DNA of 64,000 nucleotides, taken from positions 372,001 to 436,000 of the forward strand of contig RDEW01000017.1 of the NCBI GenBank assembly GCA_011109175.1, written 5' to 3'. Every line of letters starts with the position of its first letter. Position 1 is the stretch's first letter. The translations under genes were made by a program, and so were the position numbers. Origin of the DNA: Dicyema japonicum. Its lineage: Eukaryota > Animalia > Dicyemida. Under the pieces are notes generated by a model that made no database searches, was not told the DNA's origin, and worked only from the letters and a program-made list of their open reading frames with translations. This document shows, one piece after another, positions 960-18,477 of the stretch.

Positions 960-3900
960 AAATGAATAAAAATTATTAAATTAAGGCATCTGAATGACCA
1001 TGCTATTTCCCCTAACAATAGCCAACGAGATACGTTCTCGGAACCAACCAGTCTCTCGCGGATCCTTGGTCACAGCTTGAATCATGGAGCCGATCTTACG
1101 AACCAACTCATCTGCTTGGGGGCCAAGGATTCCTGACGTTTCCACCGCGAATGGAACAAAAATACTCCTCCGAAATTCTCTGGTACTTCCTCCTCTTTCG
1201 TTCCTCGGCCTGCTTTGAAGCATGTCCTGGGTCTGAAGCAGAAGCAACCAAATTAGACGGGGAATAAGTATCAACACACGTCGCGTCCCAGATCAGGTTT
1301 CGTCCGTTGGCGAATGGAAAAGTCGTCATCCCATCAGGGCGTTTTCCATCGTTTCGGGAAAGACCAGCAGGTTCTAACAGGCAATGGTGTCCAGCAGAGG
1401 CAAGGGAATTCTTTAATGTCATGTTAAGACAGGAGTGCCTGGGGAAACGACCCGCACTCATCTTGCATGACAAGGGATGATAACCAAAAGGATCGATCCA
1501 ACGTCCACAGCGGCATTTTCTTTCGGCACACAATTTAAGACCAAGACGAAGCGAGGTAGCTATTCTCACAGCCTCATCATCCAACAGGTTTCCAATTTCG
1601 GCAGATGGATAAGCGTTCATCCAGGCCCCCGTCGAGTGACAACTGGCTGTTTTGAGGCAGGCAAGCCTTCTTACATCTTCCGTCTTTTCAAGGGACTCTT
1701 TCTTCTTTTCGAAGACACAAAACAAATAGGACTTTTGCTTATCACAATTGACCGGAGCATTCAGGTACAAATTCATCCATTCATCCCAGGCTCCCGACGG
1801 CGTCAGCGGTACGTTTAGTCCGGAAGTAGAGTGAAGGACCGTATCCACTAAACGCCTTGACGAGCCGAACGAAGATAAATAGGCGCCCAAAGCAACGTCC
1901 GAAGGAAGAGAAAGACCCAAACCACGCAGGCTACAGGGAGTGAGGCCTGTAACCATCCGAAATCATCAAAACAAACATTAAGAATGGACCCCATCGTTGA
2001 CCGGATATCCATATCAATTAACGATAGAAGGTCTTTTTCGGCGTAGCATGGGGATCCCCGTAGAATAAAAAGGAGTTTTGGGAGAAGGAGACAATTCTTC
2101 AGCATAAAAAAGGCGACATGACGGTCCAAAAAACTCATCCTGTCGGCATACTGACGTAAATTAGTCCTCTTGCCTTCCAATAACTCCCTCACCCGGTTTA
2201 CCAAAATCCCACACCCAAGGAAGTCGAGAGAATCAATATGAGTCTCCCTAACCCCTGGGATGATTCGCAGAGTTTTCTATGAAAAAGGTAGAATGAATCG
2301 GAACTCAAATTCAGATTAATTGCTTCGCACTTTTCATTGTTAAATTCCAGACCGATTTTTCCACACAAACTCTGATCGAGCAACTTTGGAGAGAATATCA
2401 TCGGGACTTCCACCGAGAATACAATCGTCCAGATACCAGACGTTCAGTGGAGTGCAACGGTCCTGGGCAATATGGTCGATAGACAAGGAAAATAGAAGAG
2501 GACCGAGTGGGTCCCCCTGTTGAACTCCGGATCCGGACGAAATAATTCCACTGCCAAAAACAAGAGGGGATGGATCCGAATACGCGAGATATACAAAGGG
2601 ATAAATCTGAGGAATCCTCCTCCTACAGGTATCAAGGACGGTGTCCCTTCTGACTGAATTGAAGGCATTCCGGAGGTCCAATTTGAATAAAACTCTGTCC
2701 TCAACATTCAATTCAGCTGATTGTGAGCAAATTCTCTCACTGCGTGGATCCCAGCTTCACAGCCGCCATTGATTCCGACACCAAGCTGCGAAGGACAAAA
2801 TTCGGCTGAAATTCGGGAGATAACAAAACGACAAGCCATTTTTGCGGATAAACGTCGAAATACGTTTCCAATTGCAATGGGGCGAATACCACCATCTTTC
2901 TTTCCAAGGCCCGTTAGATTCGCCGAAAAGAGGAGATTCCGACCAAAATCGGAAACGTTTCCGGAAAGCATGCGAGCTACGAGATCCCGGGTTCGCTCCA
3001 AGAGTAGCGATCCAGGCCTGCCGACAGAATGGGACACCAAGTCTGACAGATGGCCAGGTTTGAGACCGTCAACTCCTCCACTGCTACTTCTTCGGAAAGA
3101 ACAAAGAGCGTTGTAAATGGCTGAAGTGGAAATATCATGCATAGATTGTTCTGGACGAACAGGTTTACAAAAGTCTTCTGGTTCAGGAGGATGTTTCTGT
3201 CCCAATATACAGAGTGTCTTCTGGTTCAGGAGGATGTTTCTGTCCCAATATACAGAGTGTCTCCTGAGTGGCTTTCACTGGGTCAGAATCCGTACAAACA
3301 GTTCGAACTGCAGCAGTAAGATCGCCTCCATCAATTTCCTCCTGACACGAGAGCTAAGCCTCTCAGGAGCCATACTGGATTGTTTGGAATTGGACTTTGG
3401 GAAGTAATCAACTGGGGAAACAAATAATTCTTCAGCCAGGGACTCCCATGAATACAAAAAGGCACTCACGCGCTTCTTCAGGACATGGGATAGAGAGGGT
3501 TTCCGAGAAGATGGGGCAGGCTTACGCTCTAACCCCATAGCCAGGACAGGGAAAGGGAAAAGAACCAACCAATCCTTTTTCGAGCCATTGGACACAGCTT
3601 TCTCAATGCAAGAAGAAAGGGCAGAAGCAATTGAGATCCGGGAAGCCTTGGGGATCCTGACAGGGATAATCTTCCTTTGTCGCGTGTTTGATAATAAAAC
3701 CAGAAAATCCTCCGGAGACATGGCTTCCAGAAGATCTGATACAGATGATGATGACACAAAATGATCATGAGGTTCAATTTTAGTGAGTTCCAGACGCACG
3801 ACCACGAGGGAAGTGATCGAGCAATTTTCTTGGATAGTTTTTCATAACCTATGTGGTAGTAACCAACACATACAGAACATTGAATCCCGACTTGCGAGAA

Positions 3901-3960
3901 TTGGATACTCTGCACCCTTATATGAGGTGTCTTCGTGTAGTACATCATAAAAACAGACAT
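960..3960 (-). mobile_element. CRE-clade non-LTR retrotransposon (RT + CCHC + restriction-like endonuclease), near full length, frameshifted
   Basis: Consecutive minus-strand ORFs give GIRPIAIG, QLGVG, DLRNAFNSV, GVQQGDPLGPLLF, WYLDD, then C-x-CG...H-x2-C, RH, KRPDG, WDATCVD and RISLAIVRGN. Confidence 0.9.
3173..3258. repeat. Perfect 43-bp tandem duplication inside the CRE ORF
   Basis: gtcttctggttcaggaggatgtttctgtcccaatatacagagt occurs twice. The length is not a multiple of 3, so it shifts the frame. Confidence 0.95.
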
Positions 3961-4524
3961 GAATAGATAATAGGAGAGAGAACTGTATATATTAACGACG
4001 ACAACTCACGACAACAACTCAGCATTTGGTAATAAAATTTGTTTCATCAGGTAAATTCTCAGATGTATTAAGTTCTAATTGTTTATCCTCGTCGACATAA
4101 TCAACGTGTTTGTCTCTGATAGCTATCGAGATCAACTCTCTATGGTGGAGAATCTGATTGCTTCTTCCAATCAGTGGTAGAAACCACTAAGCTCGAGAAA
4201 TCGACATCTTTTTAAATTCTTTTGAGAGGGAGAAACGTCTTGGGTACAGAAATCAGTAGGAACCATGGGGTAACATGGAAAAAATCTCACATTTTGAAAT
4301 ACAGGGATCATTTAATTGGTTATTTTAGCCATTTCTTTATTGGTGTCCCTTTTTGATGGTTAGATGATGTGAATAGCCACAAGGTTGTGAATGTTGTACT
4401 TCTGAATGTTGCCAGACGTCGCAGGCTCTCGAGAAAGGACAAAGAATTCCTTCCTATCGTTCAGAGTAAGTTTACATATAATTGTGTTACTAATAACTAG
4501 GGTGACCGAAAGTCACTTAAGCGG

Positions 4525-4870
4525 TAGCTACCTTTTCTGGGACGCAACCTGTGTGGAGAGCCTCTCTCCCTCCAACCTTTTTGTGACAATAACTAGCCCA
4601 GGATCTTCTTCGGAGAAGGCTGAGTACCTAAAAATGAAGAAATATGCATGTCTAAATGGACAGTCTATTTTTTAACAATTCGTCGTGGAAAACATCAGGA
4701 ATCATAGGAAGTAGGTCACTGACCCTGCTAAATAAAATCGGATCGCGAAGAAGAAAAATGATAGGAGAGAAAGGAACTGGATCATTGAGCGCATTTCTTT
4801 TCAAATCGTCAGGGGAAATGCGTTCTCAATAATGAGGGCACCAGAAGTTGTAACTGTTAGTTTTAAATCG
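4525..4870 (+). mobile_element. 5'-truncated CRE 3' fragment (REL domain)
   Basis: WDATCVESLSPSNL...; 3' part IVRGNAFSIMRAP followed by AT-rich sequence. Confidence 0.8.
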
Positions 4871-4949
4871 TATTTATATTAAAAAATGTTATAAAGTCAA
4901 TTTTTATTTTTTATTTAAAGTTTTATTTTTGGGAAAAAACAAGACGTGA

Positions 4950-15838: not shown

Positions 15839-18477
15839 ATGGCTATGATTCCAAGTGAGATCACAGTTTGGGGTTGATTTTATTTATTAATTATAAGTCA
15901 AGGGAGGTTTTGGACTTTCTGGAAGGAAAACAGGTTGAATTGCTTGTAAAGAAATTTACCAGGAACAAGGAAGTTAAGCTGTTCGTTCGGAGTTGGGTCG
16001 AAGGAATTTAAGACGAATGAAATATTAGGTGAGAATAAAGTTCAATGGAATGAACAGAATTCGATGTAATGCAAAAAATATTAATTAACAGACATATAAA
16101 GGGCACCAAGAAACCGTTGGTCATCTCAGTCTTGGATGACGGAAAAAAATTCGGAAAGATAAAGATTCCAATTGAAGAAATACAAAAGGCAATCCCAATT
16201 GAGTAAGATTTATGCCTGATTACCCTCATGAATGTTTTTATCGATTAGATTCAGTAATTCGCCTATTAAACCCTCAAAGAAGTATCCACTAGCCTACGGA
16301 TATATTGAATACAAGTGTTGGGTGACCCAATTCGCTGCGGAATCATCAGGAGGTTCAAAATTGTCACTCAGGGAATCCATATCTTCCCTCAGCTCTGGGT
16401 TCGTTGGCCTCAAGAAACAACAGTCAATGATGGTAAAGAAACAAAAACCCAGCACATTGGGGGAAGCGCCTGAGGTGGTTGATCGCAATTATCATTCAGA
16501 CTCGGAGTACGACCATCTTGAGACCAAGAATTACGATCATTAAGCCTAGAGAGGTCTTCCCCGGGGAGAAAATTACTGTAAGAGGAAGGTGTTTCGGCAA
16601 CAGTGAAGAAGACATTGAATCAATTTACGTTTTTGACAAACTTTGTCAGCAATACGTCCTGGAGTCCCCTTCTCTCATCCACCTGGTTCTACCAGAGGGT
16701 TTGGTAAGTTGTGGCATCATTTCAGCAAGCTGGAAAAACCGAGATCATAATCACCACAAAAGAAGGAGGCCGTGGTGTCTGCCTGGCAACCATGATAATA
16801 AAAGAGAAGGTAGTATTACTTCAATTAATAGACACCCCCACAGGTGGATGTAAGTTCATCATCTTCATCCTTAAATTTGGAGACACCGTCGTATACTTCT
16901 CCAATTACCATGGAATCGGCTTCGGTTCCTGTTCTTTCTTCACAAATTGTTCTTATTTGCGGAATTATCTTCAGAACACTGATTTTCTACTAGAAGAAAA
17001 TCAACCCCCGAAGAGTAACGTTGAATCAGTTGCTTTCGATCAAAATTTGGCGGAGACAACTGGCGCAGACCAAATCACTCAATATTCTGTGCCTAAACCA
17101 CAGACAAAACCTGAGCCCATTGTGACAAAAATACCCGAATTTGAAATTTCCAATCCTTTTGTCGAGAAGTCCCCTGAACCACTCTTCATCGAGTCAAAAA
17201 ACGAGGAGATCGAAAAACCATCGGTCCAGGTGCGTTCACTATTTTATCCCCCTAGAATAAGTCTCCACACTGTGAACCAGAGAGTCCCACCATGAAACTC
17301 AATCGGAGCTATACGATGTGGGGTTATTTTTTAAATGATAGGAAAGTCAAGTGAATTACGACGAAATTGAGGTTTTTTTTAAGTTCGAATCCGCAGAACT
17401 TCGAACTGGACGCGTTTCAGCCGAGCCAGGTTTCTTGTTTTGGTGACTCATAGTTCTCGTATCCTTCAAGGACATCAAGAATTGTAAATAACTCATAAAA
17501 TTATAGGAAAACGTCTTCTCCCAGCATTTGCATCAAACTCAGGAAGGTGAGTCTTCATTATTACTTTCAGTGACATTCCATGGTGTTAACGAGGAAGCTC
17601 AGAACTTTGGCAGTAAGAGAATAACCTTTGAAGCAGACTCCAATAAAACTGAAGTCTCGGATAATGTGGTGTCTTGATTTATTCATTAGGCTTTTCCCAA
17701 TTTGAGAGACTCACAGAGTTCGACTAATAGAAGTTCGGGGGAATATAACCCCGGTAATGTTAATTTTGAGTCGAAAAAAGCAGCTGATGTGGAAGGTACT
17801 CATTTTATGACACGTTGGTAGATAGCTCTGAAGTTAGGGAAACCCTTAGTTCAATCTCTAAGTCGAATACTGAGGACTACGTTAATCGAAGTTCTGGGAA
17901 GTATAACTACAGTAATGCTAATTTTGAGTTGAAAAAAGCAACCGATGGGAAAGGTACTCATTCTGTGACATATTGACAGATAATTTTGGAGTTAATGAAA
18001 CCCTTAGTTCATTCTCTAAGTCGAATACTGAGGAGTACGTTAAATGCACTTCAAAGGCGGATTACTTTGATGTGGCCACTAAAGATGACACAAAATTTGA
18101 TCCACCAGTCGAATCCATTGTAAATAGACTGCTTATTTTAGCCAAAGAATCACTCGAATACGAATAAAATTGAGCAGATTCCGTCGACTCACATAAAAGT
18201 GATCTCGGGGGAGGAAGAAAAGCTAAAAAGTGAGCTGATGCTAATCAAAGCTGAGTTTGATAACCAAAAAGCCAACTCAGGTTAGTGTTGTGTTTGATGG
18301 TAGAACTGGAATTGAATCGTGCCTTGAGTGAAATTAAAAGTGACCCCTGGTTTATTATTTTAAGGTTTGGAGGAAAAGAATAAACTGTTGAATGATCAGC
18401 TTACTAAATTAACTGAGAAATATTCACGTTTGTTAGCGAATGTCATCATGGAATGTCCTCATCTTTTGGAAGTCTGA
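15839..18477 (+). CDS. RAB11FIP: Class I Rab11-family interacting protein-like: C2 + IPT/TIG + Ser-rich linker + coiled coil/FIP-RBD
   Basis: Spliced N-terminus MIPSEITVWVKGGFGLSGRKTG...VQWNEQ...FGKIKIPI...GYIEYKCW fits the FIP C2 domain. The C-terminus KYSRLLANVIMECPHLLEV keeps the FIP-RBD spacing LL..V..E.P..L.V. It has multiple short introns; the middle exons were not fully resolved. Confidence 0.75.
17725..18040 (+). repeat. 158-bp tandem exon+intron duplication in the Rab11-FIP linker
   Basis: Two homologous 26-nt introns start at 17796 and 17954, leaving a 132-nt in-frame exon unit. Confidence 0.85.

Follow-up and report, generated by a model that had tools for sequence, protein, structure and literature searches.

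A Dicyema japonicum gene, probably of a conserved lophotrochozoan Rab11-FIP-like family with Sec5/EXOC2-type IPT domains

We analysed a stretch of 64,000 nucleotides of Dicyema japonicum DNA (contig RDEW01000017.1, positions 372,001 to 436,000; the window) and found that its positions 15839-18477 probably hold one dicyemid protein-coding gene of a conserved lophotrochozoan family. Proteins of this family resemble class I Rab11-FIPs and carry one to three IPT domains of the Sec5/EXOC2 type between a C2 domain and a Rab-binding tail. Four observations carry this assignment: a chain of open exons, an IPT domain with a special likeness to Sec5, homology of the family's tail with the Rab-binding domain of FIPs, and the same modules in the same order in at least four dicyemid paralogues and in mollusc and annelid proteins.

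The gene lies on the + strand. Its start ATG at 15839 and its TGA stop at 18475-18477 were read from the sequence, and both stand where a sequence-only reading of the window had placed them. Between them, short open segments follow one another in changing frames. They are linked by GT..AG introns, one of 84 nt and the others of 21-46 nt. The 5' block (15839-16809) consists of seven exons and six GT..AG introns of 22-46 nt and gives 266 codons with no stop, while the 3' block (17507-18477), also of seven exons, gives 255 codons and is open throughout up to the terminal stop. Exons were chained by script solely for counting stop codons; database searches were run exon by exon. The relatives described below begin M..EITVVV.SAKGLK, like exon 1 of the dicyemid gene, and the N-terminus (M..EITVWVKGGFGLSGRK..SCSFGVGSKEFKT) is parallel to theirs from the first residue on. 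We infer the donor of exon 1 (G/GTTGAT) from the frame and from the paralogue at locus C24.

The published D. japonicum assembly (67.5 Mb, 377 scaffolds, 5,012 genes) has a mean intron of 38 bp (PMC6736024). It is very improbable that the gene is contamination from the octopus host or a decayed pseudogene. Octopus does have an orthologue, but introns of 21-46 nt fit D. japonicum, and identity between the IPT exon and the Octopus protein is only about 26%; the tiny introns and this low identity led us to reject host contamination. Decay is contradicted by the stop-free 5' and 3' exon chains. A chance open reading frame (ORF) was also rejected.

Membership of the family was examined with hidden Markov models (HMMs) built from mollusc and annelid relatives only, with no dicyemid rows, and 407 open segments were scanned. 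The C2 model matched at 15950-16066 (E 0.0054), 16054-16203 (E 0.087) and 16232-16540 (E 2.9e-4), in that order. It was followed by the IPT model at 16437-16850 (E 1.9e-6) and 16708-17292 (E 0.0095), likewise in order, and by the tail model at 18364-18474 (E 1e-6). On the reverse strand no family HMM matched below E 2.9. The N-terminal C2 domain that marks class I FIPs was recognised through the relatives' model across three exons and is weak in the dicyemid copy alone. Judged by these matches, the gene would contain what defines the family: a C2 domain, a Sec5-type IPT domain and a coiled-coil tail with ..C-P..L, all collinear.

The sequence-only reading had quoted two peptides from the middle of the gene and likened them to the IPT domain of EXOC2 (Sec5). 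Both peptides were found, ..RITIIKPREVFPGEKITVRGRCFG.. in exon 6 and ..EIIITTKEGGRG.. in exon 7, and the likeness was borne out. Exon 6 matches Pfam TIG (E 0.0037, 50 of the 84 model positions). Each of the two exons, searched alone against all PDB sequences, had as its best match Sec5's Ral-binding domain (1UAD_C and 1HK6_A, E about 0.08 for either exon), with the matched residues of the chain, 7-46 and 71-89, in collinear order. The T and R of RITIIKP..ITVRG align with residues 11 and 27 of 1UAD_C. The dicyemid copy is thus predicted to have an IPT fold nearest to that of Sec5, with equivalents of Thr11 and Arg27. Among 1.84 billion representatives, exon 6 matched 189 TIG proteins at E<=0.001 and gave no self match. 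These were chiefly multi-TIG proteins, and the first ten, which were checked, have domain partners of bacterial type. Look-ups in the ESM Atlas gave generic TIG clusters only.

In a tree of the first IPT exon, the IPT domains of EXOC2, including the dicyemid's own, form one clade (96/100). Those of the dicyemid family lie outside it on very long branches, the exon being too short and these branches too long to place the dicyemid IPTs. Standing outside the EXOC2 clade, the dicyemid family IPTs were probably not captured from EXOC2 in recent times.

For the tail, the last exon scored 50.2 bits in a scan of the organism's own genome with a family tail profile (A5, 14 rows) and is 44% identical to the C24 tail; it has no significant direct match in the PDB. 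The profile itself matches FIP2 (E 5e-4), FIP1 (E 2e-3) and FIP3 (E 0.025) in the PDB, with values up to 0.07. These matches cover the Rab-binding stretch and stand among generic coiled coils. The Pfam RBD-FIP cut-off of 23.3 bits is passed by the tail of C24 (24.7 bits, E 2e-5) and by that of Sinanodonta (23.9 bits); Liolophura reaches 21.4 bits, and other relatives 14-18 where reported. Because the relatives are borderline for this model, precomputed annotation shows only C2 and TIG. The signature Y-[IMLV]-[DEQ]..L...V...C-P..L was found at the end of 26 of the 27 relatives checked, the molluscs keeping Y-I-D/E. On profile comparison, the family tail is homologous to the Rab-binding domain of FIPs.

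The family shares with class I Rab11-FIPs (RAB11FIP1/RCP, FIP2 and FIP5/Rip11) a C2 domain at the N-terminus, a long disordered middle part and, at the C-terminus, a coiled coil, which ends in a Rab-binding helix that aligns with FIP ..YIDNLLVRVMEETPxIL. It differs from them in its one to three Sec5-type IPT domains between C2 and tail, and in having Cys-Pro where FIPs have Thr-Pro.

Counting the window gene, the D. japonicum genome has six loci with like domain order, which represent at least four divergent paralogues. The further loci, each on one strand, are C24 and its close copy C157, C101, and C75 and its close copy C146. In tblastx comparisons of the window gene with C24, three C2 exons, both IPT exons and the tail were collinear, at 33-60% identity. 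Some of the paralogues join in one ORF what the window gene has in several exons: in C24 the last C2 strands continue into the IPT domain within a single 190-residue ORF, and in C75 a single 109-residue ORF extends from the IPT end through the tail to the stop. The IPT exon of C101 passes the Pfam TIG cut-off (26.4 bits). Intron 4 has no counterpart in C101, where a single ORF covers that point; a break near the position of intron 6 is present in all paralogues.

The close copies are near-identical (C146:262137-262660, of C75; C157:939275-939937, of C24) and are either uncollapsed haplotypes or very recent duplicates; the heterozygosity of the genome is 1.24% (PMC6736024). The tail of C157 looks truncated. 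In C75, two tandem duplications (862-1526 of the stretch examined) repeat whole peptides and break the frame.

The family extends well beyond dicyemids. When 150 representatives were re-scored with a profile of the dicyemid IPT exons, one protein, P0061, was singled out. It has 957 residues, a Pfam C2 domain, three Sec5-like IPT domains and a tail reading ..EYMDHILTEVMVRCPDIL... Searches started from P0061, a six-member profile and an oyster protein's C2 region found the architecture in the following lineages: annelids (Owenia fusiformis, Paralvinella palmiformis); bivalves (Crassostrea, Magallana, Saccostrea, Pecten, Mizuhopecten, Dreissena, Mercenaria, Mya, Sinanodonta, Tegillarca, Pinctada); gastropods (Haliotis, Aplysia, Elysia, Physella, Bulinus, Babylonia); cephalopods (Octopus, Argonauta); and the chiton Liolophura. 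Crassostrea virginica LOC111128182, Octopus bimaculoides LOC106870949 and Aplysia californica LOC101849032 are named examples. The Pfam cut-offs are exceeded throughout in these relatives by both C2 (31-41 bits) and TIG (27-140 bits), and the number of IPT domains is one to three.

A single uninterrupted ORF of 2874 nt (2051-4924 of one stretch examined) encodes P0061; it occurs on contigs of GCA_029979725.1 and GCA_013332715.1 and of one SRA run. For an animal, so long a gene without introns is unusual.

The sequence-only reading had proposed one gene with a C2 domain, a Sec5/EXOC2-like IPT domain and a coiled coil with a FIP-type tail, and had asked whether this arrangement already exists in other spiralians. 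The order recurs in the five further dicyemid loci and in full-length mollusc and annelid proteins, which upholds the first proposal. As to the question, the architecture is widespread in molluscs and annelids under unnamed or mis-named entries, and the dicyemid gene is therefore not unique. With these unnamed C2 and TIG proteins the dicyemid gene has in common the module order, the C2 signature FGVGSKKF.T, the Sec5-type IPT domain and the C-P tail. The dicyemid copies differ in their great divergence, in the tiny introns that interrupt them and in having multiplied into four types or more; the window copy also differs in its unusually long, repeat-bearing linker.

Family records are named "uncharacterized", "hypothetical" or "C2 domain-containing". 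Some members are labelled "exocyst complex component 2" (Octopus vulgaris, Plakobranchus, and Owenia in UniRef) or "EXOC2-like" (Mya), in UniRef and NCBI records. The EXOC2-labelled records (P0210, P0223, P0155 and P0202) are 455-590 residues long, with C2 and TIG and without the Sec5 domain. The labels are probably automatic mis-namings. If they were right, the window gene would be an EXOC2 paralogue, which we regard as hardly credible. The Sec5 IPT domain (1UAD, 1HK6) is indeed the closest solved structure for both dicyemid IPT exons. However, the helical domain of EXOC2, PF15469, is found neither in the exons of the gene nor in any listed relative, and a C2 domain is carried instead. The genome also has a separate, true EXOC2 on C13. 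The EXOC2 IPT domains form their own clade, and the contact residues vary within the family. An EXOC2 paralogue was rejected on the C2 domain, the missing PF15469 and the EXOC2 on C13.

The link to Sec5 was also seen in the opposite direction. With a family profile that has no EXOC2 rows (A4), the next-best proteins after the members were true EXOC2 proteins with TIG and PF15469 (98-103 bits). These are 41-51% identical to the query P0152 over about one IPT domain and rank above bacterial TIG proteins. Within D. japonicum, the best local match to the paralogue IPT profile was the genome's own EXOC2. The IPT domain of this EXOC2 (C13, about 562343-562858) has an exact tandem duplication of 35 residues, with ..RQQGTPGIKITVRGENLGKNVTDLISISICGVDCSL occurring twice; either the duplication is real and in frame, or it is an artefact of the assembly.

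A FIP gene of another kind was seen at C311 (about 153760-155085). Its start resembles an EF-hand, and a long coiled coil and the tail ..LYIEKLVDRIMLKNPELLE follow. No C2 or IPT match was found within 7 kb upstream of it, and it is probably a class II FIP (FIP3/4, Nuf-like).

Several observations weigh against reading the window gene as a single FIP-like member of this family with a candidate Ral-binding domain. Its C2 exons, searched one by one, have no Pfam match, and their best PDB matches all have E >0.4, with a PDB C2 protein at E 1.5. The last exon has no match to Pfam RBD-FIP (PF09457), in which it departs from class I FIPs, and the tail reads K-Y-S where FIPs have Y-I-D, a motif known from FIP mutagenesis to be important for the Rab11-contacting helix. 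In the IPT domain, the equivalent of the Sec5 Arg is lost in most members (E, V, H, I or C stands in its place in the other dicyemid paralogues and in every mollusc examined), and that of Thr11 is lost in some. Lastly, no frame is free of stops through 17236-17506, and the splice path is not unique: 17200-17506 can be crossed by 584 open GT..AG paths that use three introns or fewer.

The last of these points bears on whether two adjacent genes have been fused in the reading, a C2-IPT gene followed by a separate gene for the repeat-bearing linker and coiled-coil tail. The distance from IPT domain to tail, about 1.7 kb in the window gene vs 0.4-0.5 kb in the paralogues, would also suit this explanation. 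We consider it unlikely, given that the tail ends the same protein in all other loci and in all relatives, that the 3' block is one open exon chain with no ATG seen by reading near its 5' end, and that open GT..AG paths do cross the gap. The 3' block also includes a tandem repeat with a 158-nt unit that is in frame only without its 26-nt intron. This gives the splicing model internal support and argues that the linker is coding. A continuous reading across 16810-17506 is possible, and alternative introns of 22 and 26 nt there would yield a Ser-rich stretch. From the collinearity with paralogues and relatives, we infer that a single transcript would cover the whole gene, whose features are listed in Table 1.

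Table 1. Features of the Rab11-FIP-like gene in window coordinates.
Feature	Position	Strand	Support
Exon 1, start codon, MAMIPSEITVW.., first C2 strand	15839-15872	+	Frame; parallel to relatives' N-terminus
Intron 1, 25 nt	15873-15897	+	GT..AG, required for open frame
Exon 2, VKGGFGLSGRKT, C2	15898-15933	+	Open frame
Intron 2, 29 nt	15934-15962	+	GT..AG, frame restored by removal
Exon 3, C2 core ..SCSFGVGSKEFKT..QWNEQ	15963-16065	+	60% identity to paralogue C24; family C2 HMM 27-59, E 0.0054
Intron 3, 26 nt	16066-16091	+	GT..AG
Exon 4, C2 ..KKPLVISVLDDGKKFGKIKIP..	16092-16202	+	tblastx 40% identity to C24; family C2 HMM 63-96, E 0.087
Intron 4, 46 nt	16203-16248	+	GTAAG..TTAG
Exon 5, last C2 strands ..GYIEYKCWV.. 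and Ser-rich linker	16249-16474	+	Family C2 HMM 103-134, E 2.9e-4; tblastx to C24, C101
Intron 5, 25 nt	16475-16499	+	GT..AG, moves frame into IPT exon
Exon 6, first two thirds of IPT/TIG, RITIIKP..ITVRG	16500-16703	+	Pfam TIG, PDB Sec5, family IPT HMM E 1.9e-6
Intron 6, 22 nt, within IPT domain	16704-16725	+	GTAAGT..TTTCAG
Exon 7, last third of IPT, ..EIIITTKEGGRG..	16726-16809	+	Best PDB match Sec5 1UAD_C residues 71-89
Linker, several possible splice paths	16810-17506	+	Frame open to 17292
Five linker exons (17507-17546, 17571-17668, 17690-17795, 17822-17953, 17980-18119)	17507-18119	+	Open frame, 21-26-nt introns between
Tandem repeat, 158 nt x 2.0	17725-18043	+	Unit of 26-nt intron and 132 nt (44 codons)
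Penultimate exon, coiled coil	18142-18280	+	Open frame
Last intron, 84 nt	18281-18364	+	GTTAGT..TTTAAG
Last exon, coiled coil and FIP-RBD-like tail ..KYSRLLANVIMECPHLLEV, stop	18365-18477	+	Family tail HMM E 1e-6

Arg27 of Sec5 reportedly has a role in Ral binding. Thr11 of Sec5 hydrogen-bonds Tyr36 of RalA, and the T11A exchange lowers binding (Fukai et al. 2003, as cited in bioRxiv 10.1101/2025.08.28.672893). As the dicyemid copy keeps the RalA-contacting residues of Sec5, a Ral-type GTPase is the obvious candidate partner for its IPT domain. A Ral-like GTPase is encoded on C1 (1264771-1265208, - strand of the stretch examined). Its top ten PDB matches are RalA or RalB (E 1.3e-28 to 3.7e-24), followed by KRas at 6e-24. 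The switch I of the Ral-like GTPase is ENYEPTKGDSY, the context of the Tyr36 equivalent. A Rab11-like gene is present on C46. The Ral-like ORF closes with ..KKIIKKYIK and contains no CAAX box; either an extra exon exists or the lipid anchor has been lost. A complex prediction with the two IPT exon chains and the Ral-like ORF scored 0.00 with an uncertain fold of the partner, and is evidence neither way.

It is quite possible, if somewhat short of an even chance, that gene and family are as described and the IPT domain, as an Ig-like module, serves a partner other than Ral, spacing or self-association, making the protein an odd Rab11 effector. The losses of the Arg27 and Thr11 equivalents described above would fit this explanation and imply that Ral binding is not a constant of the family. 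The position of the family IPTs outside the EXOC2 clade and the presence of two or three IPT copies in some relatives also favour it. Against it stand Sec5 as the closest solved structure for both exons, the T/S and R kept at the two positions in the dicyemid copy and in annelid-type members, and the Ral-like GTPase of the genome with its Tyr36-equivalent context. The two sets of contact residues show opposite retention: molluscs keep Y-I-D in the tail, whereas the dicyemid copy keeps the Sec5 contact residues but has K-Y-S. That the dicyemid copy binds Ral together with Rab11 is a rather doubtful proposition.

As a Rab11-FIP-like protein, the gene product would dimerise through its C-terminal coiled coil, and contacts of C2 with lipid and of the tail with Rab11 would hold it on recycling or endocytic membranes. 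The IPT domain would recruit a third partner. In a tentative extension, for which we see only a minor chance, the family would be an undescribed lophotrochozoan class of Rab11-FIPs whose IPT domain binds Ral-GTP. Its members would then act as dimeric adaptors that couple Ral and Rab11 on recycling vesicles, parallel to the exocyst or in competition with it; dicyemids would have multiplied this class to at least four types, with the window copy keeping the Ral-contact residues.

Rab11-FIPs and the link between Ral and the exocyst have a central place in membrane recycling, and nearly all work on them concerns vertebrates, flies, worms and yeast. Taken alone, the result from the window is more modest: one divergent member of a widespread, unstudied family. 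The gene is a member of a conserved family whose architecture, a FIP with IPT/TIG domains, was not found described in the searchable literature. The comparison also corrects database names, several members being labelled "exocyst complex component 2". That molluscs, annelids and dicyemids have a family in which a FIP scaffold is joined with Sec5's Ral-binding module suggests that a direct Ral-Rab11 connection may exist there, one without a counterpart in model organisms. Dicyemids take up their nutrition by endocytosis (PMC6736024). An expansion of this family in an endocytosis-feeding parasite with 5,012 genes fits a role in trafficking, and our findings add a multiplied trafficking gene family to a parasite that depends on endocytosis for its nutrition.

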